Below, piece after piece: positions 684 through 48,500 of a stretch of DNA of 64,000 nt. This DNA is from Nageia nagi (Eukaryota; Plantae; Pinophyta), in contig JBITNC010000001.1 of NCBI GenBank assembly GCA_050084985.1, forward strand, positions 80,538,001 through 80,602,000, given 5' to 3'. A program made the translations under genes and the position numbers. Each line of letters begins with the position of its first letter. Within the stretch, counting starts at the first letter, position 1. The notes below the pieces were generated by a model. That model ran no database searches and was not told the DNA's origin. It saw only the letters and a program-made list of their open reading frames with translations.

Positions 684-749
684 CTCTCGATTGAAGATGC
701 CACCAACTCCAGATAAACCCAGAAGAATATGTGGCTTTACTTTTTTAAC
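684..749 (-). CDS. NAD-ME2: NAD-ME exon 12 ([22 protein letters not shown])
   Basis: TAG|GTT ... GAG|GTGAAT; 66 bp. Confidence 0.94.
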
Positions 750-9700: not shown

Positions 9701-12700
9701 TGCATTTTTTTTATTTTTCAATGCATCACGTTTTTTCCCCGAATTTTCCATTTTTTCCTTGTCTTTTGTCCGTTTATTTGCTGTATTTTCCATTATTTGA
9801 TCAAGTATTTTTCCCGTATTTTCCGTTTTTTGTTATTTTTTCACCGTTTTTTTTGTATTTAAGTATTTTTAAAGAAGTGAATTTTTGTCGTATTCAACGT
9901 ATTTTGATCGTTTAATGGCCCTTTTTTCCGTATTTGGCCCTGAACTGTGTTTTCAAAAAAACGTCTTTTTATTCTATGCCTCCAACTATAGAAGCAATTT
10001 GATAGCATAGCATTGATATGATGGATTTACTATAACAGTAGATACACAAGAAAACCTTACATCAAACAATCTGATAAATTACTAAAGATTAGACTCACTG
10101 AAAAGAGGCAACAAAAAAAATCATCTTGCCAAAAAAGCTACTAAAAACATTGCAACAAGACTTGGTTAGCATCAACCAAGATATTTCAGATAGGAAATTG
10201 TATCTAATCTTTAAAATCATCAATAAAAAAATGAATGATTTGAAAAAGCAGAGAAGTGCAATGAGGAACTATAGATTGCAAAACTATAATCAAGTCAACG
10301 TCATGGAAATTATAAGATATAAAGATGAAAAAAAGACAATTCATCCACACAAAAAAAAACTAGAAGTAAAAGAGTTGGAAAAACAGGGGAGACTTGATAA
10401 AACAAGGATGAAGATATATCCAAAAAATGAAGACAATAAATCATCAAACAACAATAGTTCAATGTCAAACGATCTATAGATCATTTGAGGGCGAATCCCA
10501 AGAAGCTTGTGGAAAAAGAAGGAAATCACTAATCTAAGGAAGTAGTACCACAACTGATCTGGATTTGGTGGGCAAAACCAGATGGGCACACACTATACGC
10601 CTATATCACAAAAAAGTCAGCAAATACACTAGAACAGCATGTGAGGCGTTGTTTTCAATTTCAGCAAGAAATAAAAAATAGTATGCTACATAAGTTTTTA
10701 ATTACAAATACATAAATTATACAAATGTACTTAAAATTTGTATAGAGATATGTCACTAGATCCTCCCAGATCAAAAACCGATTCGATTTATGAGGTCAAA
10801 ACCATAAAAGAGAAAATGACAAGGCTTCATAAGCATGAACGCTAAATTCCGATCTACAATTTATAACTAGGACAAGCAACCAAACAAACATGGCCCTTGT
10901 TGGCATCCCAAGTATCATCAAACACATTGAACAAATGTGCAATATAAATATCAAAGTTTGAATGCATAAATGATCGAGTAAATAACCAACTGAACTTAAA
11001 ATTAAGATTCAACCACATACTCTGAACTTGAAATTATATGAGCTGTGGAATATTGTCAAATTATTATAAATATGTAGGTAACAATTATGAATATTGCCCA
11101 AGAGTAGGCTGCTTAAAGATTAGAAAGAAATTCGTAAAGGAAGGATAAGAAGTATAATTCAAGGAAAATATATTTTGCATCTCCTCCTCATTTAAATATG
11201 TGACATAAAGAACCCTTCTTCCTGTGGTGTTCGGCTTGTACAAGGGTTTGGAACCCTAGATTTGGATGTGGATATCCTCATTGTACTCCATTGTTATTCC
11301 ATGATATAATACAGCTTGTGTCTCTCTCATCATTGTGTTGTTCCCTTTGTATGCATGTGTTGTGATATATTGGTGTTGGAAGCTTGTTTTGGCTCAGTTT
11401 GTGGTGTGGCCCCATCATGGGTATTTCTGTGTTGTACAAAGTTGTTGTATTGCATTCGTGTGGTTAGCTTAGTGTTGGAGAAGCCCTAGGGGCTGACGTC
11501 ACAACACACCTAAAAGGTGCATTGAGGTGTTTGTATGACCTAGAGGGCAATCGTTGGATGCTTGAGGGTTATAGAATCCCTAGCTTGGTTTGTTTTCGTT
11601 GAGGGTGATTTTAGATCATCACTAATCACCATTTCATACTAGGGTGCACGAATTCAGGCATGTGCTTTTCCATCTACCGCAAAGCATGCGCTTCAGATTT
11701 TTATACACACTAAAAAGAGAATGAAATACACCCGATAATGATGTATACTTAGCCAGATTCCTAGATCTGGACATGGGTGCATCGTTTCGGATGAGTCCTT
11801 GAAGCACTAGTGTGAAAGCATGCACATAGGTCATCTTAACGTAAGCCTTGTCAAAAAGATGCAAAGTGAATTACAGAAAATGGACCTTGAGATCTAGCTC
11901 ACCCTCTTCGAAAATGGCTACTAGCAGTTCAGACACCTCAAACCCTTATTTCTCCTAGGCGCACCGATTTAGGCATGTACCAAAAATGGTGCGATTGGGA
12001 GACTTGGCCCATAATGAAATGAAGTGGTAGAATGATGCAAGTGTGACTTGATATAAATAGTCTTCAAACATACCACATGTCACCTCTTGGTTGGTTGAAA
12101 ATGAGGTCAAATGACGAAGCCAAAATGATGGGCGCACATTTTAGGGTACGTGCAAAAGCATGTCCCGGAATGCATGCACCGACCAACTTGTATGCCTAAA
12201 AGAACTTAGTCAATTTTCATTACACCTAAAAGCTCTTGCAACTTGGTCACACCTTTTGAGGGGGGTGCAGAAGCATGTCCCAAATTCCTTGCGCCTACCC
12301 AAGCAAGCACCTTGAAATACAAACTTGAAAATGCTCCAGAATATTGGGCGCACAAATTTGAATGAGTGGAAAAGCATGAACTAGAAAACATGCGCCTGGG
12401 CCCCTTCACTAAATTTTATACTTAGTCAAAAAAATGCTCCTGGGCTAGGACATCTGGAAATTGGTGCACCGATTTGTGTGAGTGCCTAAGCATGTTCCAA
12501 AACCCATGTGCACAGACACTCTCCAATGCAATGGATTAAAAATTAATGAAAATGACTTGAAATTCACCATCTAGAATAGGGTGCACCATTTATGGGACAT
12601 GCTTTCTAGACTTATAACAACATAGGGCTCCGAATTCAACCAAACAAACTTAATGCTGAGATTGACTTTCCTTTTATAGACTTGCTAGGGTGGACAAGTG

Positions 12701-15700
12701 TCATGCAAGGATTGGCGCGAGTGAAGGTCCAATGCATGTGGACACACCTATCTTTCTAACAATGGACGGCCAAATTCAACACTTAGCCAAATTTTGTACT
12801 TGAAATAGGGCGCATCATTTTGGGTACATCAAAAGCATGTCCCCAAAACCTTACGTTTAGACAACTTTACCAATTTCTCCGAAATGACTTAGTGCTGATA
12901 ATGCTTCTCTATTACGAGCGCACCATTTCAGGTACATGCAAAAGTATGTGCCAAAACACATGCACTCAAGCTGTCCTAATATTTACCTTAAAAATTTTCT
13001 AAGTGTTGGGATACCTCTCTTGCCCAGGGCGCACCGATTTGGGTACATGCAAAAGCATGTACCTCAAAACATGTGTTCAGACACAAAATGTAATTTTTTC
13101 TACCAAAATGACCAGAATGACCCTCTATAACACAATGCAAAGGAGGAAATGCAATTTCCACAAAGATGACCAAGTGAAATGGGGCATGAATGATACAATT
13201 TGAGGCTGAAAATGTAAGACTTAACCCAAATTTAGCAGTATGAAGGAGGGCACATGTTCCATGGTACATGCAAAAAGCATGTCCCTCAAAACATGCACCA
13301 TAGGTGAAAGGACCAAATTTTGACTTGTTTCATCATGAAGATGCAAATTTGTTAAGTTCTCCTTCCTCTAGTCTATGATGCATGCATTTACTTAGAAAAA
13401 TTTACTTCATGCCTTTACGTTTTAAGTACAATGAGGGTCCTCAAAAGTGCAATTTTTTTGGGGGGTGTTGTGCAGGCACAACAGGTACTTTAAGGAACAC
13501 CAAGACAAGCATCTTTAACCTTGGAGGAATTGCCAAAAGATCAAGCATCCTCACTTGCAAGAGAGGTCTTCATCATTCTTCACCAAAAATACAAGCAATG
13601 TGACGTCTCATTTGGACCAATGATGAATTGCATCATGGTCACTTTGTATTCTAGTGTTGTTCATGTTCATGTTGTGCTTGTGTAACTCAAGCAAGAGCTT
13701 ATGGTCTGCGGACCCCACTATGAGTCTAGCAACAGGACGTCTCTCCTTGAGTAGTGGTATGTTTAGTGTAATGGGTTATCCTAGATTGTGGGAATCCCTA
13801 GGTAGATGTGTGTCATGTATGTTCAAGGTACACAAAGGAGCATGTCAGCATTGGGAGGACCCCACGTTGGCTCATGAGGCCATTTGGACCCCACGTCAAC
13901 CTTGAGGGCCTTTATGACCCCCATGTTGGCATACTAGGCCAATGGGACCCCCACGTTAGCATACTGGGCCAATATGACCCCACATTGGCACTATTGATTT
14001 GTTGACCCCAACATTGGATTAGAATTGGCTTAGGGTGATAACGAGGCATGACTAGTGTACATGAGAGGCTATATATTGAGGATGGAGCTCCATGATGAGA
14101 TTACCACTTATCATATACTTTCTATACCAGACCCAATCGGGCAACCATGTCTTGGTGATGCTGAGCAAATATTCCTAGATAGAATCTAGAGGAGTGGCAA
14201 GGTTGGGAGCCTACCATTCTACAGCTTAGGTGGGTGACCTAGCCCATCCGATGGAATTTCAAGGACGAGCTTCTAACTTCATTGGTCACCAAGGTTCGAG
14301 GAGACTCCTTCGTAGGAGGGTATTCGGATACTAAGGGAGTTAGTCTATCCTATTGTGTATTCGGCTTGTTGAAGGTTTGGAACCCTAGATCTATGTATTG
14401 TAATCTCCATTGTACTCCATGATCTCATCATAATAAAAGACATCTCATTGTGTCTCTCATAGTTGTGTTGTTCTTGTGTATGTTCCGTGTGTTCCATATA
14501 CTAGTGTTGGAAGGTTTGTTCTAGTGTTGTATCAAGTTGCATTGCATTCGTTGGTGATCTTGTGTTGTGCATTGTTGATAGGAGGCATTCGTACGGATTG
14601 CAAGGTGTTAGGGAAGCCTAGAGGGCTGACGTCAGGTAGTGGGTGTTGCGTGGAGGCCTTAGGAGGCTCAAGTTTGCATTGTGGGGTGTTTGGGGTGCCC
14701 TAGGGGCCCAACGTTGGGTGTTGGGGGTTGTAGAAGCCCTAGTTTGGTTTTTTTTCACAGAGGGTTATTTTGGATCCTCACAAGCAAATGGCTCAAAATC
14801 ACCAAAACAACTCTCAAATTTGCGTAAATGGCCCGAATTCCTCTGTATATAGCTTATATCATTGGTGGAACGAATATGTTGCTCCCACAACTTGAATTAT
14901 AATTTTATTTCAGTTTGCAACTCAAAACAAAAAAAGATTATAAATAGACCATAAGGGTCTCATTTTGGACAGAATGTTTGTAAAGCAAATTTGTGGAAAA
15001 TTGGCAAATTGATGTATCTTTGTAATTTTTTTGCACAAATTTATACAAAGTGGTGGAATACTTGAAAAAAAAGGATTTTTCATTTGCGGGATTGTGGACT
15101 GCTTTTTTAGATGATTTAAAATCTTCCACGCTTTGCCTTGAAAATTTTTTAATTTTAGGAAAAACTTTTTGAAAATTTTTAAAAGTTCTTGAATCATTCC
15201 TAGATCATTGCCCATCCATAACTTGCACAATAAGTGAACATATTCTAAGATTTTCTTTCATTCTATGACATCAAATTAGAATTTTTCATTTGAAAAAAAA
15301 TTTGTGCACGCTTGTTGTGTCGTGTTTTCTTTGATAGCTTATCGATTACACTTGTGTATCGATAGCAGCTTTGCTCCCCGCTCCTCTTACAGATAGATTG
15401 GACTTAGGTTATTTTATTTTTAGGTTGAAAGACTTCGAATGAGACTTCTTGATCGATCTGGAAGTAAGAAACCTTAGACACTACTTCATTGTGACTGCTT
15501 TGTCATCTCACCAATAGTGATTCATTCTTGTCCCCTTTTTCTTTTCTTTATTTTACACTTTCTTTAAAATCCATAGCAACTTTCGAACTATTGCATGATA
15601 AACACCTCGATCCCTATAAAAAACATGTTAATAGTTACTACCTCTACTACACAACTCAACTGATTCCCAAATAAGAGCTACACCCATTTAAGCTTGTATT

Positions 15701-18700
15701 AACAACAAAGGCTTCATGAGAAACCTTGGGGTATCGATCCTTACAAGAGGAGTTCAGTAATGTGTTCTCACCTACTGTTGGGTTGCTTTCCTGTCTTGAT
15801 CATCTCGTGGTGATTGTCGAGTAAGAGGAAAAATTTCCTTCCCAACAGGTTCCAAAAAGAAAATGTTTCCATCATGAGGGTCTATTGCGGTGCTACTTTA
15901 TCAGGTACTAAGTTATGTATTCTAGTAATTTGAAGAATCACTTTCTTTTCATAGCTCAAGTGATTAAAATTGTAAGGGAAAACACAATGTACATAACATG
16001 TGATTTAATGAAGAGACCCCATGTTGCTTTGATAGTGTATTCATTACATGTGAAATTGTTAAGTTCGTGTGAAGAAAAGTTGCATATAAGTTTCTTGAAC
16101 TTGATAACCTTACCAATACTAATGTAATAAACATTATTAAAAAAAATTGTGGAGAACATGCAAAGAAAGAAAAATGTGTGCTTACAAAGGTCACTTTTGA
16201 GAAGTCTTTCATTGTTGGTGCCAACATCCAGCATGACAGGGAGTATCTGTGTATACATATGCCAATTATATTAGAGACAATATGATCACATCAATCACCT
16301 AATGAAGCTAGTTTGTAGATAAATTTCAAAGCAAATGGTCCACAGCAACTTCAAATCCAAAGCTTCCCTATACCAGAGTTGAATGCTCACCCATGCTTTT
16401 TGCAAGCATGCATCTGAAGGGGTAAAATGCTTATTTAACATAGCATGTACACAGACAATACTTACTTTTTGAGGATTAATTCCAGCAGCAGCCACATACA
16501 TATCAAGCTTCCCAATAGGTATAGCAATGCCCTGGACTCCTAGATCCCCAAGGCCTAATATTCTGCTTCCATCAGTTACAACAATCATATCCACCTGTCC
16601 TCCATAGAAATAAAATATATATATATATATATAAGCATTTCAATCAATTTTTGGCAAGAACTTTGTAAACAAGGTTCTAGAAAACAATAAAATAGTTTCC
16701 AAAGGCTATACAATTGACTTTGAGATAAAAAAAAAACACTTAGCAAATGTTGCTAGAAAATAAATTATTAGGAAATCTCCAAAACTGTTGTATACATGAT
16801 TACATGATTATTTCGAGTCAAATATTAATGTCAAGTAAAGATAGCTTCCTGGTGTTGCATTCTAATACCGTGGACACCATACTGAAATTATATAGATAAA
16901 GAGATACCAGTTGAAACTTCTTGAAGAACTAGACCACTTTAACTAGAATCTATCAATATTCAACTGCAAGAGCACTTTTAATATCAGATGAAAAATCTCA
17001 ATGGCAATTATAACGTTTGTTTATGGAGAGAAACTGTTGGAGATTGATCGACCCTAGGATTATGTATTTGTTCCATGCTCACATTGTTTATTTATTCCAT
17101 TTGCCTCATTTTTAGTCATATATCGCTAATAGTTTTTAAACTCATGTTATCTGTATTTATAATCTTGGAAAGTTGCATTCTCCAACTTGATTCACAGCTT
17201 GAAGCTACTACAGGGACAAGATATAGTATAAACCTTGCAGTAGAGAAATTAATCAAACTTGAGTGCACAAGCCAGGGACAAAATGTTATTAAAACAAATC
17301 AAAGCAGAAAGAAATATTGCATTGTGTGACATCCCCCATTGTACTTTTAGTAGGACCAGTCTGGTCATCTTGTATTATACTTATTTGATGTACTTGCATT
17401 ACATTATGTAACTTGGGATAGGAGACTTAATGGGTCAAATGGACCCCATTGTGAGCCCCAAGTGGGATGTCTCCGTCCTAAGTAGTAAATTAGGCATATA
17501 TTGCATTGGAGATCCCGAATTGTGAGAATCCCAAGGTACATTTATACATTAGGCTGATGGATGGCCACCAACATGCTAGCGCCACACTAGTGAGGGCCCC
17601 ATACCCTACGTTGGCTTATTAAGTGATCATGAACCCCACGTTGGCACTTTAAGTGATTGGGCCCCCCAAATACCCAACATTGGATTAGATGGGCCTAGGA
17701 TGACTCCTAGGTGAGTTCCGGACACAAGTAATGTATAAATAGACATTGGAGCTTCAGTATTGGACAGCCATTATTGATCATTACTACTACTTCAGTCTTT
17801 CAGATGCAAGTCTTAGGGGTGCCAAGCATACCATTCCTAGGTGGAGTGTCTAGAGGGTAGTCAGGCATTGGGATTCTGGTTATCTACGGCATTGGTGCGG
17901 CACCTTTGCCCATCGGGTGGCATCCCGAGGGTTTACTTCTACCATTCGGTCGGTTAGCCAAGTTTCAAGGAGGGCTCCTTCAATGGAGAGGATTCTGGAT
18001 CTGAGGGAGTGAATCTATCCCATGGTCCTACAATTGTTCAGTATTGAAGATTTCATAGTATTATGCCCTAGTTGGCTCCCTTGAGGCCAACGACTACCCA
18101 TTAGGCTTGGTATTGTATTAGCTATCATTGTATATCATTCGTATAGCCAGAGGGCATTTGAATCTCATGCTTATGTGTATTGCTTCATCTTATGCATGTG
18201 TTGGATCTTGATGGTTGTATGTGTTTGTGATTATCATTCAAAGGTATCTCAATGTGTTAGGGTTTGGATTATACTTGCATATGCTAGACGTTGGCATTTT
18301 GGGTATCTGAAAGTTTAATGTTAATGCTCTAACCCTGACGTTGCATGCTTGACGGTTTAAATGTGTATTGGATGCCCTAGACCTGACACTAGGGCTTGAT
18401 GATCCTGTATTGCTAGTTTGTGGCTGAGTTTTAATTTTGGATCATCACACACTGCTGACCAAACAGACAAAAAGGACCATAATTCCAAACTAAATGCCCA
18501 AATGGACGATGGAAGAGACAAATGTTACTTATGAAGGAGGAAAAAAAACCACCCCTTTGTCAATTAAGATTTAATTCTTTTTCAGCCTGACACAGAACAT
18601 ACTGCAATGTTTTCTTTCTTAATTTTGCCTAACACAGGATATACTGCAACATTTTCTTTGTTAATTTTCTCTTTATTATTGCTTTCATTGTATAAGGGAA

Positions 18701-21700
18701 AAAGTTGTAAACACAAGCAAATAGAAATGTGTGGTAACATACTCGACAAGAAACAACTAAAGCATTCTTACAGAACTTTCTGTGCAATCCATTTTCAGTG
18801 ACAGTTCTCTACTCAAATTAAGAATATGGAGCAGTTTGAACACACCTTCATTTTGGTGAAATTTAGTTGTAGTTTCCTGATACAACAAATACCATTGCAC
18901 AGTGCAGGAAATGTGTGAGAATTTACATATTCTTTTCTAGCAATTGTTTTAATTTTTCCAAGGGTGGACAGAGAACTGACATATGCATGCATGTGTGTGA
19001 AGCTTATAGATCCCATTTAAGGATATTTATGGAAATGTTGGATCGCTTAGGGTACCACTGTTTTATTTCTACAATCTCTTAAAAAAATTTTACAAGTAGA
19101 AGAAACAATCTACTTAATTTTCAAGATAAAGAATGAAAATCTTGTAAGTTTTAGCCAAGGAAAGACATATATTGCACATTTAAGTACAAACAAACATCAA
19201 TTGGTGGCGAAAAAAACTTTTTAGATACTACGCAGCCAGTTCAAATTGTCCATGGTGCCAGAAATTGTTGGATTTGTTTCGCAAACCTGCTCAGATGGCC
19301 AGTTGTAAATCATTGGAAGCATTTCCCCTTTATCCCTTGCAGAAAAATACATTCCACGTGGACGGCGGAAGAGACCACTATAGTTTTGGCAAACCAATCC
19401 AACTGTTGGAGTGTAGATTATTGGAGCAAATTCTTCAATTTGATCTATCAGAACCTGTCAAAGTTTAATAAAAGCTGTGAAATGTCAAGGATCTATCTAT
19501 ATTTCCAATGGTTTAAAACCCAATAGCAACAAAAAATTCTGAGTTTGAAAAGTGAGATCTGTGAATAGACTTCACATGCATGGCTGTCCAGACGACAGAC
19601 CAAGTTCAAACCTTGTAATACAGTGTTTCATTTCTGTCATGTAATCTATTCAGAATCCTCCACTTTGCTAGTGCAGTTGAATCAGCTGGACCATCTCGAG
19701 TGTTATGTTCTAATGATCGAAAAGAATCCACTGAATGAAACAATGCCAGAGTTAGCGATCAAAAATGTGTTACTGCATTTAGTGTTCGAGAGTAATTTTG
19801 ATGGTAAAAACATTTATTGCTGTACTTCATATATTTTAGGAGGTAGCAAAAAATTGCGACATACAAACATAAAAAACAAAAGGTGTGCACACACAAATTC
19901 ATAGGTCAAAAAAGAAATAACTTATTTTAATGCCTTCAAGTGACCAAAGTACTTTAGTGGGACTCAAAAGTGCATTATACCATGAACTCACAACAATGTT
20001 AAAAAAACTTGTTATAAACTCATGAAGAGCCCACCGAAAGCCGAATATCAAGGCTATCATTCAATATCAATTGCTAAAGGATAGATATGATCATCGACCA
20101 ATGTGAAGGACGGTGCAAGATCTTCTGATGTCCATTAGTGAACTAAGAGGACCAGGTTGGGCAATCCTCAGAGGGCATCAACAAAGTCCTCCGTCAACTC
20201 TCCTAACATCCAACGCTGATTATCCTCCAAATGCAGTAAAGAATCTGGTAATACATGTCTATTTCAGTTTCAACTACAGGCAATGGGGCAGGCAATGGGG
20301 GCTAGTATATGATCTTAGACTGAAGAGTGATATCTCTATCAAAACAAAATCTCCCAAGGAAGTGAATTCCACGGTGGTTTCTCATTGAAGGACATGCTCC
20401 TACATTTATGAAACATCACTGTGTGTGGCAACATTATCCAAAAAAAAAATTCTCACTACTACAAGAAATAGGCAAAAGAGGAAGATTATAAGGCTAGTAG
20501 TCTGTCAAGGATCATTCAATGCCTAATATCTAAGAGTGACAGCTCATTGCCCGTATAAGCAAATTTTTATAGACAAAATCATGAAGGAAATTAGCAAGCA
20601 ACAACTTGAGAATCTATATACACAATTATCTTCTACTAATGTCTTAAGTAAATACAACATCTAACAATAAAGTGCCCCTTCGCCTTCACTTCCTATAGAG
20701 GACATAGGAGAAAATATCTTTCACATCAGAGAATGTGGTGACAATCTCAACTTACAGCTGATGGGATCATTTTTTAATCTGACAAAGTGGTATTTTAAGG
20801 CTTTTTTCAAATAGAATTGAAGATGGTCAAAGAAGAATCTAATGCCATAAACAATACGAATACGAACTTGAAATGGGACACAATATTTGGATCATGAGAC
20901 AAGAGGTTGTGAAGGAGACAAGCAAAAGCATTATTTATGACCTCCAAGTAACCTGAAAATATCACTAATAGATATAGACCACAAGCTCTTTATTTATTAT
21001 CCTTTTAACTGTAACAGCCTCATTGCATTCCCTTGGAATGCCCCCTGAACCTTGGTCGATGATCATTACTAAACTTGTGCATGAGGCCCAAGTTGTTCAC
21101 AATTCTGGACTACGCTTTTGTTTTGATGAGTTCATCTACTTGAATTCATCCATTAAGACTTGAGCAACATATGCCTTTGTTACAGGTATTTAGTAGATGT
21201 TAGCCAAGCAACTTTCATACTATTTGAATCATCGATAGTACTTATTTTGTATGAGCAATTACAGATATATATATAGAGCATTTATCAAAATAAAGACTCT
21301 AAGTTCCTTATCAATACAATGTACACCATATAAACCAAAATAGAGAAAGTTAGTCTATGAAGATGGTGATGGATTGGAAAAGCAAAATGGTCTTACCAAC
21401 ACCATCTTCAACCTAAATTATTCATGGAAGCTAATCACATTCTAAAGCAAAGGGCTACATAAGGAAGAGTATTATTTCAAGACACTTGAGATTGCTTTTT
21501 AATTATCTAAAATGATTTTGTGTGTGATTTACTTGATCAATCCAAAATAGCAGTTTCATCAATTTTGGGATATTCTAGGCTTAGGCAAAATATTTGAAAT
21601 TAGCGTTATCTTATATGCACATTGCTTTAGTTGGGTTCACCTAGAATCTGATTTGTCGAACCTATATAAAGCAACCCCTACTTATTGTCATAAGACAAGA

Positions 21701-24700: not shown

Positions 24701-27700
24701 GCATGTGATTGACTTGTTGAAGCAGAGAGTTGCTATGATTGGATAGATGTTGAGGATGTCATAGCATAATCAATAGCTATTTTCACAGTACACGTTACTA
24801 TGGACATTGGCATATGATGGGATAAAACATTACCTTTATATGCAGTGTCCCAAAGTGAAGAGTAAAGATAATGTTTATAAGGACAAAAGGCATACCCCAA
24901 TAGAAAAAAATTAATAAAGTACAAATAGTAATCATGTATATAAGAAACAAATGCAAGGCCCAATTTGAATCCCCATACTGATATAAATCACTTAAGTTTG
25001 TAAAATCATTCAAGAATTGAGGTTGGATTCACTCTATTTGTAAAAAATACATCAAACATGCCAGGACAAAAAGTAAAGAAACAAAAAGCATGACCAGCAC
25101 TCAATATGCCCCTAGCAGAAAAAAACTCAAAATTCATTAAGAGAATGAACAAATATATAGACATTGTGCCCGTGAAGAAATGCTTACAAAAGCGCTGGCA
25201 TTGCTGCTCAAATGAAATGATACGAGGTGGAAGAAGGCCACGAAGTCCAAGCCTGTCTCTTTCTGTCACTGGAAAAGCAGTTTCCTGCCCATTAATAGGA
25301 GGAGTTAAATACAAAAACATCCTTTACGAGAAAAATGGAGACAGTTCAGCATAGAACAGGAGGCCTTACAGTTTTCCTTCTTACATTATGGAATACAATC
25401 AAATTAGCGATCAACTTTCAAAGAGTCTGAATCCTTTCATATCTCCTAACACATTAGTTTTAAAGATTTGACATGGTGGGTAATAACCCCTTCATATACC
25501 CTTTGATCACAACCCTTTAAAAACAATAAATGATCTCATTTAACTAATCTGAACGTTTTTCTAATTTGGCCCTTTGGCTCAAAATTACGAAGAAAAGACT
25601 GGATGAATCATGCTAAACTGAATTCCCAGTCATCATCTTCTCTGCCTCTGGTTATTGTAGAATTTTTTAAACTGTGCCACTGTTCAAAAAAAACTGAAAA
25701 CATAAAACAGCCCATAGCAGTTTTATACAGTTGACTAGCTACATAGTACAGTCTAATACTATAAACTAGAAAAGGATGCTTGAAAAACAAACCACACCAA
25801 CATTTTACTTAACATGCCACAATACAAAAAAAGCAATATGATCAATACAAAGTATAAATACAAGCTGCAAAATCATGAGATAACATTGCTACTAAATATT
25901 ATGGTGGTAAAAACCCCAAAAGATTAGTGAAAGAGTATGAAGAAATGTCAAAGTTTTCTTACATTCAAGGAAAAATAGATTGTATGTAAACATGTGCCCT
26001 ATATGTTGATGTCTGGCCTTTCCTAGCCAATCAATCAAATTCTAAGTAGTTATGTATTTTGATGTCCTAAATTCCTAATAGATCAATGTTATTCTATATA
26101 GCAAGCTCTCTGAAGCGTTGATGATTCCTCCACCTGGTATTATATTGTGAATGAGCCAATACCTGGTATTATATTATATTGGACTAAGAACTGTGAAACG
26201 AATTCTTAGGGATCAGTTGACTTAGGCTTAAAGGATTTTACAACATAAAAGTTGTAAGCCGGGTGTGTTAAGTACCTCCAAAGTCGCCTACAGAGATACC
26301 CAAATCAGACATGAAAACCATGTAATGTACACACTCAAAGAGTCAACATAACCATCTTCCATATTAGATATAAGATGACCGAACCTATAATTGCTAAAAT
26401 TTACATAGAATGGTTTGATAAAAAAGCCTATACACTCCTGCATACCGGATTGGTGGATTAGATGTGTGGGCAACATTAACACAAACAGGCCACACAGGAA
26501 AAAACGCTAAAACAGATCCATAAAACACCTCAACACCTTTAGAAAAACATTCAATTCACAAAAGAAGTTGAAACTGGTGGCAACTATCTACAAGCCTCTT
26601 CACATGTACTTAACAGCCTAATGACTTGGGTGCCCATGATTTCAAACAACAGCTAGATAGGGAATGAGAAACTTTTCATAAATGTCCTCAAAGCAAATGA
26701 TTACTCATGAAAAGTGATCAACAATGCATCGCATAAAGTTGAGAAAGGATGAACTGATAGAGAACCAACCATGAGTCATATACCTCCCATATGTAAGGAG
26801 GACCTTGAAACAACTAGCTAAAATTATCAAAAGAGCACATATCAAAAAATTATTTCTACCTCAAAACTAGGAATGCATTTACATATGTCAAAATCATATT
26901 GAACTACATCAACACAAATACCTACCATATGTAAGAAGGATCATAAAACAAATAGATAAAATTCCCAAGAGAGCACATATCCAAAAAAAAAAATCTACCT
27001 AAAAACAAGGAATGCATTTACACGTCAAAATCATGTTCAACTACATCAACACAAACGAGTTTACAAAATCATGTATGAGTGTGTGTATCTGGTACATCAC
27101 GAAAACTGAAAGGCCTATACAAGCAAGACATAAAGAAGATTCTGTGTATTGGAACCACAAGGTTGCCAAATCAGCAATTGGGGAGTAAGTTAAAAAAAGC
27201 TAAGTGTTATACTTTCTTGAAAGAAGGATCAATTGGAAATCAAAATTCATCCTTGTAATGTTAATAGGCAATCACAACTGAACATTAATAAAGCCTAGTT
27301 CCCTATACTAGATATTATTTGCAATCAAAGGGAAACTTTTGGAACATAACTTTAAAAAATAGGAAGGATAAAATAAAATTGCACTTTAGCTATATAAAAA
27401 TAATTTTATTTAAGTGATTTCCTTTATATATGCAAAATATCATTTTAAGGTTCTTAAGTGAATTTCTGAAAATTAACAATACATTTATGCACATTCTCTT
27501 TTAAGGTTTTTACATGGGTCCACCTAGGTAAACTCAAAATCCAATTTGTGATTCCTTTATAAAGCACTCTCAAGTGCTTATCTCAAATATGATAAGACAA
27601 GAAAAATAACGCTCAATCATCAAGAATTTGTCACAGTTGAATTCCAAAGGCATCTAAGGAGCAAAAGCATGCCTCCAAAAAGAAAAGCAACTGAAACAAG

Positions 27701-41125: not shown

Positions 41126-41185
<60 letters not shown>

Positions 41186-44100
41186 TATGTTGGGTTGTTA
41201 TATGCAAAACAACATTCAAAATATTAGAATGTATGCTAAGATTTTAATCTTATATGTTTTACATATGAATTCCTCTTTAGTTTGTGATATTCCTATTTTT
41301 TTAACTATGGTTAAAAAATCAATGTAATAAGACTCTATACAATTTAGTATAACTTGTAGTATTATAAATCATTGTAACATGTGACTTCTATATTATTTTT
41401 GCGATATTAGATTATTTTTGCTTGGAGGTTTGGAAGTCTCGAAGGCTTGAAGTTCTTGGAATATTTGACGCTTCTTATGAATGCTTTGATGCTTCTATGA
41501 TGCCAAATAATACCATTTTTGTGAGAACAAGATTTTATCCTTTATATGTTTATTTTTACATTATTTGCTCGATTCAACCTATATTTTTATTAATACCTTA
41601 TATTGTATAATTGAATTTTATAATAAAAAATACAATAATTACAAGATAGCAATACAAAACTAATTTCATAATTAAATCTAAAACCTAATTAGAAAGATTT
41701 TGATACTTAATTGTTTTTTGAAATAAGTTTTTAACATGAAATAAAAATTATTAACTGATGGGCAAGGATGGTCGTGAAATCTCTACCCTGTTCGCAAGGC
41801 ATTTACAGTAAACATACTTCGTTCAGCAATGGCATGTCGGACAGGGACTTGTGATGCAATATTGAGAAAGCACATGCTTTCAACAAAAGCAACAAACTAA
41901 ATACAAAGAACAAATATTTATTGGTATAAAATGCCCTAATTTCTTAATGTAGAAAAAGATATTAATGCGGCACCTTCGTAAACCATGGATCATGGAGAAC
42001 ATCGCTGCCCCGTTTGTGGACAACGGAGGGGCGGGTAACAACAGATTTGTGCGCCATCCTGCTTTGATTCAAAAATCCTATGCCTCCGCCATTGCCGGAA
42101 TTCAGTATTCGCTGGCAGCCGGATCGGAAGACGGGCCACATCGTCTCCTATTTTCGCTCTGATGTTCTATGAGAGTATAAATATATTATGTATTCAAGTG
42201 GATCGTGCTTTTTGGTTGATCGCTTACGCCTCGCCCTCCTCTAGGAATTCAGAAAGGGCAAACATAGGGTTGTGTCGTCTGCCTCGGTTTAGTTACTGTA
42301 ACCGTGGCTTCTTAATCTCCCCAGTGTGAATAGAAAATTAAGTTATTTTTTATTTATTGGATGCCAGGAATCTTTGTCAATGTGCTCGACTGACATGGGG
42401 TCCCACCCTTTCATCTATGAGAGATGGGAAGCATGCCCAGCAGGCATCCGCTTCCCTTCTTCCTTCTATTTTTGAACGCCACTTGTCGTTCTGAAATAAA
42501 GTCCTCCAAAGGATGGGAGGTAGGGCCGTACCTAAATCGATGGTGAATTTTATGACGTCACTAGCCTGGGTCCGAACAGGAGCACGGCAGGAAAAAGGTT
42601 CGGTCTGTGAAAGAACAATCACGCTCTTGTGGACTTATTACAACCGACAAAAGAAACCCAAAACCATGGGCCATGCTAAGAGGTTTGTCCTGTACAATGT
42701 AGCATTGACATTGATTTGAAAGAAACACAACCTGATCTACAAAGAAAGCTAATGTTTTTTTTTTTTTTTTTTATTATTATACAGAGGTTCGGTAAAGTAA
42801 GTTCATTTTCTATAAAGTTTTAATCTTGTTTAGAGTTTGTTAGTATAATTTCATTTGACCCAGAATCCGGATTGAAAGCTTCATTCCACCTGGTAGGTAT
42901 TTCGAGGGTTCCATAAAAATAGAGAATCAGATTTCATTCTACACCTATAACCTTAAATCTAAAACTTAACATATCTATCTTTACCCTAAAATCTAAAAAC
43001 TAACTTTTGAATCTTCTCCTAAGTAAATACCTTCTTTTTACCAATCCACACAATCTTGGGACTAACTTAAATATATTTTTTAAAATAGAGAATCCTGAAA
43101 ATTTCTAAGAAGAGACAGATCTAGCCTCCAAAGTTGCATATAAATCTTACTGATAAGTCCTAACACTGTCACATAACCCTACTGTACGAATTCAAAAGCC
43201 AAGGAGCTTCATTTTCATTCCCATCCAATGAAAAATAAGCATATATAACTCGAGTACGCACGACAAGACTTTAAGACCATATTCAAAACACTTTCTGATT
43301 AATGGCAGGAGTCGATAACAAATATAACACACAATCTTATTTTTAAAATAACGTTTGATTGATAGTAGGACGAATTTAGGACCAAATGTAGAGCCTGCTT
43401 TTAAAAAATGGACTCTGGCTGAAAAAAAATATTGACATAGATTATGAAATACTTAAACCCCGAGAAAAGAAGAGAGCGATATTGTACCTTGTTGAACCAC
43501 GGATCATGGAGAATGTCACTGCCTCGCTTGTGGACAATACAGGGGCTAGGCTTGCAGGTTCTGTGCGTTATCAATCTTCGCCACTCAATGCCAATACCAG
43601 AATGCCGTACACGACGGTAGCCAGATAGGAGGATTTGCCACATTATTTCTCTGTTCTCTTAAGCAAAGAGCAAGCGCGAGTTATATTGCTCGGCCCTTGC
43701 TAGCTCCGTGGAGAGCTTACAGTGCGTTCCTGCCTTCCCACCTTACAATTCCAGCGCATTATCCCTGCCTGTATAAAAAGGCATAATGAAAATAATATAA
43801 TAAGGTAACAAGAATACTGTTTTTCAATTACCTACAAAAAGGTTAGGGCCCGCCCGATCATTCCAGGACTTGTCAGTTTGTTTGCATCTCTGGCAGGAAG
43901 CCGCGTACGCAGAATTCAGCGTCTGGTCTTTCCACGTGGCGTTTTGAATGGCAAATCCGAGAGTGCAGGGTACGATGCCAGCGAGCTCCACTTGGGTTAC
44001 GACGCCACTTTTGGTTTTGGGAATTAGATTTGGTATCGCAATGAGGGAGGAGGATCGATTCGCTCATAACCGCATTTATTAAAAGCAACGGTATAGGTAG

Positions 44101-47100
44101 GTTCGCAGCTTCGTGGCATAGGGTTGGAACTTGGAAGCTCTGATGGCATTGCTTTTCTTGTCTGGGGCCCCGACTGAATAGTTTAATAACGATATTATGT
44201 TTATGCCCTATGCCCTTCTTTTAGTACTAACTTGGAAATACGTTTTTGACCAGTCCATGTTTACATATTCCCATGGACGCATCAAAGAAGCTGGTTGTTT
44301 TTCACCTGCTTTAAGAAGATGATCTGAGCCATGGAAGTCCAGAAAGAGATCCATACCGGCATCTCCTTGAAGTGGAGAAGGAAAAGGCACGGTGGTGACC
44401 CACTAACAAGATGGATAAATAATTGGCTGTTGAGGCTAAAGTTAATTTTATCATTATGTTTTTGCTTGGAAACCATCTTTAGTAAGCTCTCTAAAGTAAT
44501 GATATTGCATTCTCATCTACAGTAATTCAACAAGATCTTTTTTCATATTATTCCATTCTCATCTACACAAATTCAACAAGATCTTTTGTGATATTATGCA
44601 ATTCTCATCTATAGTAATTCTAACAGGAATATATTTGAATCTGAAGCCTCCTATTAGCTAGACATTTCGACAACCATTCTTCTCAAAAATGCCTACATAA
44701 TGTTTTTGGTTAAAAATCATCTTTGGTAAGGTTGTCTATAGTTAATATGGTGCATTCTCCTCTCCAATAATTCAACAGGATTTATCATATTATTGCATTC
44801 TAATGTACGGTAATTCAATATGATCTTTTATCGTGTTTTGAGTCTTAAGCGTCCTATAAGCGATACATTTTAACAGCCATTTTTCTCAAAATTGCCCTTG
44901 ATTAATTAATGTGGGCACCTTGTTAAACCAAGGATCGTGGAGAACGTCGCTGCCCCGTTTCTGGACAATGCAGGAGCCGGAAACGGCAGCTTCGTGCGTC
45001 ATACTGCTTTGACTCAAAAATCCGATGCCGCCGCCATTGTTGGGGTCCAGTATTCGCCGGCAGCCGGATCGGAAGACGCGCCACATCGTGCCCAAATCTC
45101 CTGGTCTGGTGTTCTATGATATTATGGATATACCACGTATTCACAAAGATTGTGTTTGTAGTTACTCCCAACTGTGGCTTCTTAACCTCTCCTGTTTGGA
45201 GAGAAAATTAAGTTATGTGTTATTAGATGCCAGTAATCTTTCTCGATTAGCTTGAGTAACAGGGAGTCCCTCTTGGACAGAACTCATCAATTGCTGATGG
45301 GAAGACGGAGTGATTGTTGTAATTAAAATCTCATGGGATGCCATGGCAGGCAGCTGCTTTCCTTCTACCTTCTGTTCGTTTTTAATACCATTGTCATTCT
45401 GGAAGCGAAGTCCTCCACGGGATGGACAGTAGGTATCTACTTAACATCAAAGGCGAACTTTATGACGCCATTAGCCTGGGTTTGATGTATGACATTCACG
45501 TCGAGAAAAAGGACGAAAAAGGTCCGGTTTGTCAAAAGTATAATGGACTTATTCCGAGCGACCACAGAAATGCAAAACCATGGGCCGTGCTAAGAGGTTT
45601 GTGCTGTAGCATGCACGTTTTTTGACAAACACTGCGGAACCTATGAAGAAAGTTAAATGCATTTTTTAATTTGCAGAAGTCACATCTAGAAAGTTCCGAT
45701 TTTTCCGAAGAAAGCCCGGTCTAGCCTAGCAAATCGCATATAAATCTTACTGATGAAATATATATTGAAATGTCAGCTACTGTGTAATATTTTCCTGTAG
45801 ACGTGATTGGATTTTTTAGAAATTCCCCAACAAACCTTGAAATTCAAGGCCAAGAAATGTCGGAACACTGTCACCTTAACCTACTGTAAGAATCCAATAA
45901 CCCATGAGCTTCGCATCTATGTCGGATCCGATGCAAAAAACAGCATATATCGCTCAACTATGCAGTAGGCTTGAAATTTGACGTCTACCCCTGCGCGTCG
46001 GTAAATTTTCTCTGACGGTTTCGATATTTTAATGCCCATCAAATTTTTTATGCCCTTCCAAATACATTAATAATACAATAAAATTATATTTTTATGTGAT
46101 TTAAATTTAAATATTTTTAATTATATATAAATATTTTTAAATAAAAATATGTATAAATATTAATAGATAAAAATTTTAAAAAATCAATGAATTTATAATT
46201 TTTTATTATCAATATATATATTTTTTGAAGGTAATAAAGAATATATACCCGTTTTGTGTGACGGGTAGAAAAGAAAAACATGATGTAAAAAACGTTTAAA
46301 AAGCCTAAAAACGTTCAATACGGGCGTCAAATTTCAACCCTGCTATGCAGTAATTGATAACAAATAGAACACAAAATTTCATCTTCTTTGCCTCCTTGAT
46401 TGACGGCAGGACGAATTTTGGAGCAAATTTTAAACCTGTGTAAATAAACAATCAACTCTGACTGACGAAAAATATTGAAATAATTTATGATCTTAAACCT
46501 TGAGGAAATTAAGAAGAGAGTGATATTGTACCTTGTTGAACCATTGATCGTGGAGAATGTCGCTACCTCGTTTGTTGACAATAGAAGGGCTGATTTTGGA
46601 TAGTCTGTGGTGCGTCACCCATCTTCGCAAGTCAATGCCGGCGCCGCAGCCCGCCTGCACGACCCGATGACTGCCAGATTGGAGGACTTGCCACATTTTA
46701 TCCATTTTCTTTCAAGCTAAGCGCAGACGTGTGTCGTATTTTTGTTTGCCTACGCCCGGCGCTCGTTCGCTCCAAGAGGCAAACAAAGTATCCGCCTCCG
46801 AGCTTTAACGCTAAATGAAAGGGTGTGATGAAGATGCAGTTACACGCTACATTCCTCCCTCAAATACAGTTATAACGTCTGCCATTATTCGTCCTTGTTT
46901 CATTTCGCGCCATTTGTCATTCTTGAACTAAAGCCTTTGAAAGACTTGGAATTTGGCCAGAAATTCGACAGGTATTTGCCCTAATTTATTGCATTTCCCG
47001 TCCAACTATTCATTTTACGTTAACGGAGACTTGGAATTTGAAGTATCCCTCATTCTTGCTAGTGTTTTTTCTGACTATCAGTACGAGTTTCATATATTTA

Positions 47101-47850
47101 AGATCTCGTTTATCAAAATATATGTGTAGAACTCTTAAATTAGCACATAATAGATAAAAATTTGTCAATGCATTGGAAGAACAAGAATTTCATGGACAAA
47201 AAAAGAGGATTCGAAGCAAGAAAAAAATTCGGAAATTCTAAAGTTCTGTATTCTTCGCTGTATTTTTTTTTTTATTGAGTTTGATATTCCACCTTCTTTT
47301 TGCCTCCCAGTTATTATTAATTTTATACTTCTGCTTCGGAAGTAGGAGCTGTCATTTACTGTATAATAAATTTCCAATCACAACAGAACGAGATTTTCAT
47401 GTTCATGTCATTGGAAATTCCCCATACAGTAGCCATCGGTACCCAATTTCAAGTTATCAACATCTGTAATAATTCCGATTTCGAATTCAGGCTATCAACA
47501 TCGGTAATAATTTCATAACTTTGCAACTATGAACTTCAATCAATCAATATATAAATGCAAAACATTATTTTCTTCCAGTCTTGCATCATTGATTGAGACT
47601 CTTCAAAAACAAAACATTAGCGTGAATGAAAATAATCGGCTGAAATATTGCTGACAAAAATAATTGAAACAATTTATCAATAAATTCTTGATACCTTGTT
47701 GAACCACGGATCATGGAGAATGTCGCTGCCTCGCTTGTGGACAATGAAGGGGGTGGGCTTGGAGGCTCTGTGCGTTATCAATCTTCGCCGCTCATTGCCA
47801 ATGCCCGATTGCCATACCCGACGGCAGCCACATAGGAGGATTTGCCACAT
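684..47850 (-). CDS. NAD-ME2: Mitochondrial NAD-dependent malic enzyme, beta-subunit type; spliced gene with five candidate alternative first exons and 11 constant exons in the window; 3' end lies beyond position 1
   Basis: Manually assembled exons with GT-AG ends and matching phases give a stop-free protein with plant NAD-ME motifs: [95 protein letters not shown]. Beta-type features include [23 protein letters not shown] and [10 protein letters not shown]. Confidence 0.95.
1013..1126 (-). CDS. NAD-ME2: NAD-ME exon 11 ([38 protein letters not shown])
   Basis: TAG|GGA ... GTG|GTCTGT; 114 bp. Confidence 0.92.
4033..4138 (-). CDS. NAD-ME2: NAD-ME exon 10 ([36 protein letters not shown])
   Basis: CAG|T ... 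AAT|GTGAGA; 106 bp; completes the GAGSAG nucleotide-binding motif. Confidence 0.94.
4293..4399 (-). CDS. NAD-ME2: NAD-ME exon 9 ([35 protein letters not shown])
   Basis: CAG|GGC ... AG|GTATTT; 107 bp. Confidence 0.95.
4553..4636 (-). CDS. NAD-ME2: NAD-ME exon 8 ([28 protein letters not shown])
   Basis: CAG|TTT ... CAG|GTATTT; 84 bp; metal-binding FED and FNDD motifs. Confidence 0.96.
4741..4844 (-). CDS. NAD-ME2: NAD-ME exon 7 ([35 protein letters not shown])
   Basis: TAG|AT ... CAG|GTGAGT; 104 bp. Confidence 0.95.
5075..5180 (+). mobile_element. Short remnant of a Copia reverse transcriptase
   Basis: Translates to [19 protein letters not shown], resembling the Copia RT segment FEMTDLGLLHFFLGIQV. 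Confidence 0.5.
5686..9978 (+). mobile_element. Full-length degenerate hAT DNA transposon in NAD-ME intron 6
   Basis: Perfect 8-bp TSD CCTCCAAC (5678-5685 and 9979-9986); CATAG...CTATG termini; subterminal CCGTTTTTT-like repeats; internal transposase remnants. Confidence 0.9.
6297..8760 (+). pseudogene. hAT transposase pseudogene (BED zinc finger, DUF659-type RNase H fold, C-terminal dimerisation domain), with introns and several stops
   Basis: Motifs [51 protein letters not shown] and [46 protein letters not shown]. Confidence 0.88.
11220..11622 (+). mobile_element. Truncated LTR (3' part) of the TGTGAC...GATCATCACA family
   Basis: Visibly similar to 14355-14782 (ttcggcttg...ggtttggaaccctagat...cattgtactccat); ends ttttagatcatcac. 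Confidence 0.6.
11630..15847 (+). mobile_element. 5'-truncated LTR retroelement: repeat-rich non-coding internal region, G-rich PPT and 3' LTR (13466-15847, TGTTG...CAACA) interrupted by a solo LTR
   Basis: GGGGGG directly precedes TGTTGTGCAGG at 13466; the LTR ends CCCAACA at 15847; the internal region has many degenerate GGGCGCACCGATTT...CATGCAAAAGCATGT units. Confidence 0.55.
13599..14782 (+). mobile_element. Solo LTR (TGTGAC...GATCCTCACA family)
   Basis: TG...CA termini with perfect 5-bp TSD AGCAA; internal GACCCCACGTTGGC repeats. Confidence 0.85.
16186..16246 (-). CDS. NAD-ME2: NAD-ME exon 6 ([20 protein letters not shown])
   Basis: CAG|ATA ... T|GTAAGC; 61 bp. Confidence 0.95.
16466..16594 (-). 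CDS. NAD-ME2: NAD-ME exon 5 ([43 protein letters not shown])
   Basis: CAG|GTG ... AAA|GTAAGT; 129 bp. Confidence 0.96.
17325..18449 (+). mobile_element. Solo LTR (same family) in intron 4
   Basis: TGTGACATCCCC...GATCATCACA; TSD CATTG/CACTG with one mismatch. Confidence 0.82.
19287..19454 (-). CDS. NAD-ME2: NAD-ME exon 4 ([56 protein letters not shown])
   Basis: CAG|GTT ... CAG|GTTTGC; 168 bp; contains the catalytic YTPTVG motif. Confidence 0.95.
19612..19730 (-). CDS. NAD-ME2: NAD-ME exon 3 ([40 protein letters not shown])
   Basis: Acceptor CAG|TG completes the phase-1 codon; donor AAG|GTTTGA; 119 bp. Confidence 0.95.
22238..22968. mobile_element. Foldback or MITE-like element with long (~190 bp) imperfect terminal inverted repeats, in intron 2
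   Basis: GGAGACCCATTTTGGCAGCATATGTTGAGGATG...TTGCAATTCAATTCCCA...AAAACTTGGCTCT is mirrored at 22775-22967; AT-rich core; no TSD identified. Confidence 0.75.
25188..25284 (-). CDS. NAD-ME2: NAD-ME exon 2, first constant exon ([32 protein letters not shown])
   Basis: Acceptor CAG|GAA in phase 0; donor T|GTAAGC; 97 bp. Confidence 0.95.
26781..27056. repeat. Tandem duplication of a ~138-bp unit
   Basis: TACCT.CCATATGTAAG.AGGA...GAGCACATATC...GGAATGCATTTACA...AACTACATCAACACAAA occurs twice head to tail. Confidence 0.85.
29100..32893 (-). mobile_element. LTR retroelement of the same LTR family: 5' LTR (32893-31733), tRNA-Met-type PBS and an internal degenerate orphan ORF; no 3' LTR found
   Basis: Minus strand begins TGTGACGTCCCC at 32893; PBS TGGTATCAAAACC near 31731-31719; long stop-interrupted reading frames at 31349-29114. 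Confidence 0.7.
32894..35949 (+). mobile_element. 3' part of a Gypsy-like element (internal 3' region, PPT region, LTR 33950-35949) with a further LTR (33957-35172) nested just inside it
   Basis: GCTTGAGGACACGCAATCTCAAGCAAGGTGGAC precedes TGTAAG; terminal pairs TGTAAG/CTTACA and TGTAATGTTTCCA/TGGGATATTACA. Boundaries are tentative. Confidence 0.45.
36091..37335 (-). mobile_element. Solo LTR (same family as 13599 and 17325), inverted
   Basis: Minus strand reads TGTGATGTCCCCC...GGATCTTTACA; TSD AAAAT/AGAAT with one mismatch. Confidence 0.8.
37443..40649 (+). mobile_element. Ty1/Copia (Tnt1-like) retrotransposon, degenerate and internally deleted
   Basis: LTRs at 37443-37799 and 40280-40649 (TGTTAAGAGGTGAAGT...); degenerate PBS TGGTACTAAAGC; PPT AAGTGGGAGAA; gag [13 protein letters not shown]; protease [13 protein letters not shown]; [13 protein letters not shown] and DMKNLG; integrase core missing. 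Confidence 0.9.
41129..41183. repeat. (TA)n microsatellite
   Basis: Uninterrupted TA run of about 27 units. Confidence 0.95.
41974..42141 (-). CDS. NAD-ME2: NAD-ME first-exon copy V5 (type A): [56 protein letters not shown]
   Basis: ATG at 42141, 168 bp (56 codons), donor AAG|GTGCCG in phase 0. This is the copy closest to exon 2. Confidence 0.88.
42142..42720 (-). promoter_or_regulatory. Putative promoter/5'UTR of V5, paralogous to the region upstream of V3 (45087-45640)
   Basis: Conserved non-coding blocks are shared with 45170-45610. Includes TGACGTCA (42553-42560) and a site II-like TGGGCC (42667-42672, paralogue 45581-45586). Site II motifs are established features of plant nuclear genes for mitochondrial proteins. 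Function here is inferred. Confidence 0.5.
43488..43643 (-). CDS. NAD-ME2: NAD-ME first-exon copy V4 (type B): [52 protein letters not shown]
   Basis: ATG at 43643, 156 bp (52 codons), donor AAG|GTACAA in phase 0. Confidence 0.9.
43644..44350 (-). promoter_or_regulatory. Putative promoter/5'UTR of V4, paralogous to the region upstream of V1 (47851-48440)
   Basis: Shared blocks CCTGCCT.GTATAAAA.G.CATAATGAAAA, GGTAGGTTCGCAG and CCGACTGAATAG...TATTATGTTTATGCCCT; G-box CCACGTGG at 43932-43939. Confidence 0.5.
44452..44897. repeat. Nested tandem repeat: two ~200-245-bp units made of ~45-bp subunits (ATTGCATTCTCATCTACAGTAATTCAACAAGATCTTTT)
   Basis: The subunit recurs about five times between 44500 and 44830; unit ends GCCTCCTATTAGC...CTCAAAAATGCC and GCGTCCTATAAGC...CTCAAAATTGCC match. 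Confidence 0.75.
44919..45086 (-). CDS. NAD-ME2: NAD-ME first-exon copy V3 (type A): [56 protein letters not shown]
   Basis: ATG at 45086, 168 bp (56 codons), donor AAG|GTGCCC in phase 0. Confidence 0.88.
45966..46342. mobile_element. Non-autonomous hAT-type MITE (377 bp) between V2 and V3
   Basis: TIRs TAGGCTTGAAATTTGACG / CGTCAAATTTCAACCCTG; perfect 8-bp TSD CTATGCAG (45958-45965 and 46343-46350); AT-rich core. Confidence 0.9.
46532..46705 (-). CDS. NAD-ME2: NAD-ME first-exon copy V2 (divergent B-like, type C): (MDK)[55 protein letters not shown]
   Basis: In-frame ATGs at 46705 and 46696; donor AAG|GTACAA in phase 0; ORF track 46493..46705. Confidence 0.88.
47695..47850 (-). CDS. NAD-ME2: NAD-ME first-exon copy V1 (type B): [52 protein letters not shown]
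   Basis: ATG at 47850, 156 bp (52 codons), no stops, donor AAG|GTATCA in phase 0. Too short to appear in the ORF track. Confidence 0.9.
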
Positions 47851-48500
47851 TCTCTCGGTGTTCTGTTAAAACAGGAGTAAGACCAAGCTATATTTTGCGG
47901 CCTTTGAAAACATCCCTCCCCCAAACACCTTAGGAGTCCAACGTATTAACCCTGCCTCGTATAAAAGGACATAATGAAAACAATGTAATGACAAGAATTA
48001 TCAAAGAAGACAAGAATAATGTTTGTCAACTGCACATAAAAAGAGTCGGTCCTGCACGAAAATAATCATTCGAGAAACATGTCATTTTGTTTCCAGCCAT
48101 GGCGTGAAGCCGCATCCACTGAACTCTACTTTTGGTCCGAAAATACTTGATGTTATTCGACATTGCTTGGGAATGAAGTTTGGAATCGTAATAAGTGAGG
48201 ATGGATTCGCTAATCACAGCATTTATGAAAAGCGGGGTAGCAAATCCTCAATTTTGGTAGGTTCGCAGTATGGGGTTGGAAGGTCGGATGAATAAGCCAT
48301 GGCGCCGCCGACTGAATAGAAACAAAATATATTATGTTTATGCCCTGCTTTTGGGAAGAATTTGGAGCACTCAATGTCTACAGATTCCCATAGCGGGAAG
48401 CGAAGAAGCTGTGCAATGGAAGACTGGAAAGAGATGGACAGGAATGTCAGATTAGAAACTACGCAAAGAATATAATTTAGTTTTTTTGTAAGCTATAAAA

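Follow-up and report, generated by a model that had tools for sequence, protein, structure and literature searches.

Tandem alternative first exons upstream of a single gene body in a beta-type NAD-malic enzyme gene of Nageia nagi

The window analysed here is a stretch of 64,000 nucleotides from Nageia nagi (GenBank assembly GCA_050084985.1, contig JBITNC010000001.1, positions 80,538,001 to 80,602,000), and all coordinates given below are positions within it. Its minus strand carries a gene for NAD-malic enzyme (NAD-ME), which runs past the window start and has five copies of its first coding exon. The exons in the window align to residues 55-453 of a 617-residue protein from a relative (P0181) and to an angiosperm NAD-ME2 protein (P0018). 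Homologues hold both PF00390 and PF03949 according to precomputed annotation, these being the malic enzyme N-terminal and NAD-binding domains. The window encodes KRG, the beta-type signature, and not KRS, and the top-scoring named homologues are annotated as the NAD-ME '59 kDa isoform' or as NAD-ME2. By homology, the gene is assigned to the beta-type (NAD-ME2, 59-kDa-like) subunit of mitochondrial NAD-ME.

The constant part of the gene is present once. Searches with P0018 and P0181 (tblastn) returned one match only for each constant exon encoding residues 55-453, all below 25,300. The exon 2 acceptor, gggcag/GAAACT (the slash marks the splice site here and below), lies at 25284 in phase 0. Exon 2 is 93% identical to L001, a spliced 2536-nt transcript of the relative that was recovered from a metagenome scan and serves below as the outgroup.

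Exon 1 was matched five times by the same two proteins, with E values of 1e-5 to 1e-9. The five copies, V1 to V5, lie between 41974 and 47850 on the minus strand, and translation of that strand gives 52-58 codons each with 0 stops and 0 frameshifts. The encoded peptides start with MW (MDKMW in V2) and end with KRGSD(I/V)LHD(P/Q)WF(N/T)K. GT directly follows every copy, and all five end in AAG/GT (Table 1). The copies differ from one another at 10-38% of nucleotides, V1 and V4 being 90% identical. Relaxed tblastn and blastn searches with V1-V5 revealed no sixth or degenerate copy in the whole 64 kb, nor did tblastn and blastn find any other NAD-ME exon in the window between or upstream of the five. 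The layout is thus one of same-strand, tandem, paralogous first exons upstream of a single set of constant exons, with the order and number of units taken as in the assembly. An earlier reading made from the letters alone (the sequence-only reading) had described five intact same-strand copies ending in phase 0 at AAG/GT above a single acceptor at 25284, and translation and tblastn confirm this. It had also argued that no NAD-ME exon lies between the copies and that the array is hence not a tandem gene cluster; the searches likewise found no such exon there.

Table 1. Features of the NAD-ME locus (window coordinates; MITE, miniature inverted-repeat transposable element).
Feature	Position	Strand	Remarks
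V1 leader and putative promoter region	47851..48244	-	X1 contig reaches ~48244; homologous to V4 upstream region
V1	47695..47850	-	52 codons; donor AAG/GTATCA; first exon in use at low level, long leader
V2	46532..46705	-	58 codons; MDKMW start; donor AAG/GTACAA; no RNA seen in four runs
MITE-like insertion, 381 bp	45964..46344	.	V2-V3 spacer; 20-nt terminal inverted repeats, 90% complementary; no part in array function
V3	44919..45086	-	56 codons; donor AAG/GTGCCC; no RNA seen in four runs
V4 leader, ~90-120 nt	43644..43780	-	contig 5' ends at 43730, 43737, 43739 and 43763; one upstream ATG
V4	43488..43643	-	52 codons; donor AAG/GTACAA; first exon in use
V5 leader, ~165-243 nt	42142..42384	-	contig 5' ends at 42306, 42314, 42317 and 42384; one upstream ATG
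V5	41974..42141	-	56 codons; donor AAG/GTGCCG; first exon in use, 4/4 runs
Exon 2, first constant exon, 97 nt	25188..25284	-	single acceptor common to first exons
Further constant exons, one copy each	681..19730	-	tblastn and blastn with P0018, P0181 and L001
Constant-exon positions (approximate)	19609-19730, 19284-19457, 16466-16597, 16186-16249	-	tblastn/blastn
Constant-exon positions (approximate)	4741-4842, 4552-4639, 4295-4402, 4033-4146, 1010-1132, 681-750	-	tblastn/blastn

Evidence for splicing comes from Logan contigs of four runs (X1 to X4) from four studies, the runs being labelled 'RNA?'. In an index search, five runs, each from a different study, matched 6-10% of the words in the 6-kb stretch, which is what exons alone would be expected to contribute. 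Contig coverage is confined to the exons and leaders of V5, V4 and V1, apart from short fragments of the MITE. All other spacer sequence is bare, which indicates that the records are transcripts and not DNA. All of X1-X4 have a loose contig end at 41973, X2 and X3 also have one at 43487, and X1 has one at 47694. These ends carry 26-30 letters whose only match in the window is at 25258-25283, at the beginning of exon 2. Since the contigs stop at the donors and carry letters unique to exon 2, V5, V4 and V1 are each spliced directly to the single exon 2. A break 26-30 nt into exon 2 is what would be expected of a k=31 de Bruijn graph where isoforms share an exon.

The V5 junction is present in all four runs, and in X4 this exon terminates a 2314-nt contig, which is as long as a full transcript. 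V4 junctions are listed in two runs (X2 and X3); in addition, an X1 contig (43488-43730) ends at the V4 donor and an X4 contig spans 43578-43763. The V1 junction comes from X1, in which a separate 550-nt contig extends from the V1 donor at 47695 upstream to ~48244. V5 and V4 are used as first exons, and V1 is weakly seen in the same role. The RNA contigs match V1, V4 and V5 at 99% identity or more, leaders included; the variants comprise three synonymous changes and two replacements in the N-terminal part, R11Q in V5 and G16S in V1. The sequence-only reading had proposed that alternation among first exons yields up to five isoforms. At least three are supported by RNA contigs joined to the single exon 2, while five remains unproven, V2 and V3 being uncovered.

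The regions upstream of the copies carry putative promoter elements. The V4 and V5 contigs have separate leaders, whose ends fall 25-40 nt downstream of A/T-rich boxes. At V4, the TATA-like block TTTTTATAC lies ~30 nt upstream of the contig 5' ends, and this block is present at V1 too, where the TATA-like TTTTATAC is found near 47955-47968. At V5, three of the four contig 5' ends (42306-42317) follow the A/T-rich box AATAAATAAAAAATAA (~42342-42357) at a distance of 25-40 nt. These upstream regions are themselves related: 47692-48137 at V1 aligns to 43485-43928 at V4 with 72% identity, and the region upstream of V5 is 66-73% identical to that upstream of V3.

The variable exons encode mostly a putative mitochondrial presequence plus ~20 residues, closing with the conserved KRGSD.LHD.WF.K tail. 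The N-terminal parts that precede this tail have a net charge of +2 to +6 in all five copies, with few acidic residues, and fit mitochondrial presequences. Most copies have an arginine near a plausible cleavage site. Cleavage near this arginine, ahead of the conserved block, would leave mature proteins that differ by only a few N-terminal residues. Diversity among the isoforms would then lie mainly in promoter, leader and import signal.

Homology between units covers the upstream region, exon 1 and the start of intron 1, and the V4-spacer-V5 segment is homologous in register to V2-spacer-V3. The exon and upstream region of V4 are closest to those of V1 (90% and ~70% identity, respectively), while its downstream intron is closest to that of V2 (76%), which makes V4 a mosaic. 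The simplest origin suggested by these alignments is repeated unequal crossing-over or segmental duplication of promoter, exon 1 and intron-1 start. Flanks of the youngest pairs have a divergence (K) of 0.29-0.42, and their alignments (1369 nt) contain 36 gap events. Exon K is 0.11 for V1/V4, 0.18 for V3/V5 and 0.30 for V2/V4; the V1/V4 and V3/V5 exons are free of indels, and in no pair does an indel break the frame. Computed exon by exon, the constant exons of the window differ from L001 by a synonymous divergence (dS) of 0.70 and a non-synonymous divergence (dN) of 0.057. Set against this dS, a flank K of ~0.35 makes the youngest duplications roughly half as old as the split from the relative, and the copies are by this measure old. 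A separate observation comes from P0001, a 108-residue gene call from another organism in which one 11-residue stretch appears twice, 23 residues apart. This points to an unrelated species in which the end of exon 1 and its donor underwent partial tandem duplication, and the exon-1 end/donor junction may duplicate recurrently.

Constraint is distributed unevenly over the copies. In the pairs that could be scored, dN/dS is 0.02-0.19 over the last 15 codons, with which the mature enzyme begins, and dS is ~0.14-2.9. The N-terminal parts have dN/dS of 0.45-1.4, and presequences often evolve at such elevated ratios. V3 is the copy closest to L001, with differences at 12 of 72 nucleotides and 4 of 24 residues, the fewest of the five. 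When changes are polarised with L001, V3 has three lineage-specific changes in the last 72 nt and one in the last 54, where flank divergence predicts ~11-13 in the last 72 nt (P(≤4) = 0.004-0.017). V5 has 11 in the same 72 nt, close to the flank rate. Given the constraint on its sequence, V3 probably serves as a first exon in some tissue or condition that the sampled runs do not represent. There is a paradox here: V5, the most widely seen copy, is the fastest-evolving and looks relaxed, whereas V3, the best conserved, looks constrained and is absent from the RNA.

We therefore propose that the locus is a multi-promoter NAD-ME beta gene, produced by old duplications of promoter, leader, exon 1 and intron-1 start upstream of a single gene body, and consider this highly probable. 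Local segmental duplications would have copied only the promoter, leader, first coding exon and intron-1 start to give five units in 6 kb, while the remainder of the gene, more than 47 kb, stayed single. Transcription would start at one unit, whose cap-proximal donor would be joined to the single exon-2 acceptor across a 16.7- to 22.4-kb intron holding the downstream units. Because they have donors and no acceptors, the downstream units cannot enter the transcript as internal exons. The benefit would be that regulation or import could diversify while a very long gene is left uncopied. A more ambitious version of the proposal holds that all five units are live and kept by selection, that V3 is ancestral, tightly constrained and active in a tissue not yet sampled, and that the array is one instance of a general route in a large-intron genome, in which promoter and exon 1 are amplified where the gene is too long to duplicate whole, to yield paralogue-like diversity in regulation and import. 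This version is speculative, and we regard it as rather unlikely.

Several observations weigh against a fully functional array. The Logan contigs are not raw reads, and they give no true start sites, no strand and only rough levels. V1 has support from a single run, at a depth of 8, and its leader, of at least 383 nt (scored to 48233), holds 10 upstream ATGs with short upstream open reading frames, so that the V1 isoform may be poorly translated. V2 and V3 have zero depth in X1-X4. The homology of V2 with V4 stops ~30 nt upstream of the ATG, leaving V2 without the upstream block of V1 and V4, and V2 has a P to Q change in the HDPWF motif at a position occupied by P in 176 of 176 homologues; V2 is the weakest candidate first exon. 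V5 in turn has an N to T change in the WFNK motif, where 175 of 176 homologues have N. The selection tests on V1-V5 draw on few sites and one outgroup sequence, L001, and the order of the units is that of the assembly.

A rival explanation limits the live units to two or three (V4, V5 and, marginally, V1), with V2, V3 or both being silent relics that are still open by chance. Beyond the missing RNA and the state of V2 already described, the divergence between V2 and V4 is as high in the exon as in the adjoining intron (K of 0.30 versus 0.29, a comparison that is uninformative on constraint). V3 has the least positive presequence, with a net charge of +2, and its counterpart of the V5 A/T box appears degraded by eye. 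However, contigs demonstrate presence and not absence, and only five runs in all hold the stretch. In a neutral simulation with flank-derived substitution and indel rates and a per-lineage K of 0.15-0.20, V2 and V3 each stayed intact by chance with a probability of ~0.03-0.07, intact meaning that ATG, frame, open reading and GT were all kept. Every indel that separates V2 from V1 and V4 preserves the reading frame, and V3, the copy nearest the outgroup, has hardly changed in its last 54 nt since the split from V5. The existence of silent relics is a distinct possibility, to which we give somewhat less than even weight. We are more doubtful that the whole array is a selectively neutral by-product, in which extra promoters fire and the isoforms are equivalent and of no benefit. 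In favour of this reading, long plant genes often undergo partial duplications that are species-specific (PMC10487979), dN/dS over the N-terminal parts has the high values given above, the best-expressed copy (V5) changes at about the flank rate, and a single exon 1 suffices among the listed members of the relative's protein cluster that reach the N-terminus. Yet the duplicates have survived for about half of the divergence from that relative, all open reading frames, ATGs and donors are kept, and strong constraint acts on the codons of the mature protein in every pair. Among runs, the V4:V5 ratio of contig depths ranges from ~0.2 to 5, which hints at separate regulation, depth being a poor measure.

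Two further explanations concern how the array came to be seen or made, and both are very improbable. It could be an assembly artefact, or the first exons of separate NAD-ME paralogues located elsewhere that have an identical exon 2. The unit order is taken from the assembly, but the copies differ by 10-38% and have unique leaders, three are matched by the RNA contigs, no other NAD-ME exon lies between or upstream of them, and the letters to which the donors are joined agree fully with the window's one exon 2. Misassembly of the array is unlikely. Alternatively, a transposon (Pack-MULE, Helitron or CACTA), and not unequal crossing-over, could have picked up the exon-1 fragments and dispersed them, an idea that suits a transposon-rich genome. 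All units nevertheless have the same orientation and lie directly upstream of their own gene, with spacers homologous in register (V2-V3 to V4-V5). Transposon capture was rejected because none of the units is flanked by terminal inverted repeats, which were found only in the 381-bp MITE of one spacer.

The proposed multi-promoter gene has counterparts in animals. In vertebrate UGT1A, the clustered protocadherins and GCNT2, tandem same-strand variable first exons, each with its own leader and 5' donor, are spliced to shared exons (PMC1885805). The likeness claimed by the sequence-only reading holds for the layout, in that same-strand paralogous first exons feed one downstream set of exons, here demonstrated for V1, V4 and V5. 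It does not extend to content. The five NAD-ME variable exons have only 52-58 codons, belong to a plant gene and encode a putative presequence plus ~20 residues, not a specificity-determining, substrate- or ligand-binding domain.

Plant precedents are also known. In Arabis alpina, PEP1, the FLC orthologue, has undergone a partial tandem duplication that gave exons 1a and 1b, with separate starts, one exon 2 and differing expression (PMC3527215). The NAD-ME array resembles PEP1 in being a plant gene in which the duplicated segment comprises exon 1 and adjacent sequence only, exon 2 being common to the copies. The two PEP1 copies are young and, in the reference accession, give identical proteins, whereas the array has five old copies (flank K of 0.3-0.4) with clearly different N-termini in a gene for an enzyme of central metabolism. 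Of the expressed genes of Arabidopsis, ~5% have mutually exclusive first exons, a similar share being reported for rice, and type I alternative first exons can alter N-terminal targeting (PMC2174465). The type I genes share with the array mutually exclusive starts and common downstream exons. That survey makes no mention of duplication, tandem layout or homology among the alternative exons, while the NAD-ME alternatives are paralogues that arose by tandem duplication.

Within the NAD-ME family, the angiosperm NAD-ME2/59-kDa (beta) genes share an MW(R) start and motifs with the array, and the listed homologues have one N-terminus each, proteins and not loci being compared. In the clade of the relative (L001 and P0181-P0195), the N-terminus begins MSQVRSAYR instead of MW. 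In the 90% cluster of the relative's protein, 13 of the 15 listed members (of 60) reach the N-terminus and are all of one type. Two 604-residue members of P0181-P0195 with an internal Met start, and one of 558 residues, look like truncations and not alternative first exons. A search with region 1-80 of P0018 gave 745 matches; the 120 listed are all angiosperm proteins, none close to the window. A profile of the five copies gave 61 matches among 1.84 billion representatives; those inspected were mostly angiosperm-like exon-1 read-through gene calls, and none was close to V1-V5. Searches of short proteins gave no candidates for V3 and two angiosperm-like fragments for V4, neither from Nageia nagi itself.

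Literature searches turned up no report of such a first-exon array in a plant NAD-ME gene, an arrangement that the sequence-only reading did not know of either. In plants at large the arrangement has precedents in PEP1 and the mutually exclusive first exons of Arabidopsis and rice. Tandem first-exon organisation is known in animals and uncommon or rarely described in plants, and the NAD-ME gene joins this known type. It provides an RNA-supported plant case in which coding first exons are tandemly duplicated above one gene body, in a gene for a core mitochondrial enzyme, and have apparently persisted over a long period. Should separate regulation of the units hold, plants with very long genes could diversify expression and organelle-import signals without whole-gene duplication. 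For annotation, a single gene model at the locus conceals at least three N-terminal isoforms.

Several minor features lie within the introns and spacers. The ends of the MITE match several unrelated transcript contigs (up to 4143 nt) that continue into unlike sequence, which indicates that copies of the element sit in other expressed genes. The intron just downstream of V3 (44493-44840) contains five copies of a ~46-60-nt unit, arranged in two clusters with 43-46 nt spacing within a cluster; this repeat is absent downstream of V5. Just downstream of V5, intron 1 has a perfect palindromic (TA)n microsatellite of ~60 nt (41127-41186). Further into intron 1, on the plus strand and thus opposite to the gene, open reading frames at 38667-39717 resemble by eye fragments of a Ty1/copia gag-integrase and reverse transcriptase. 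A run of open reading frames on the plus strand (6552-8314), within the 11-kb intron that separates the exons at ~16186 and ~4842, resembles, again by eye, a hAT-type transposase.

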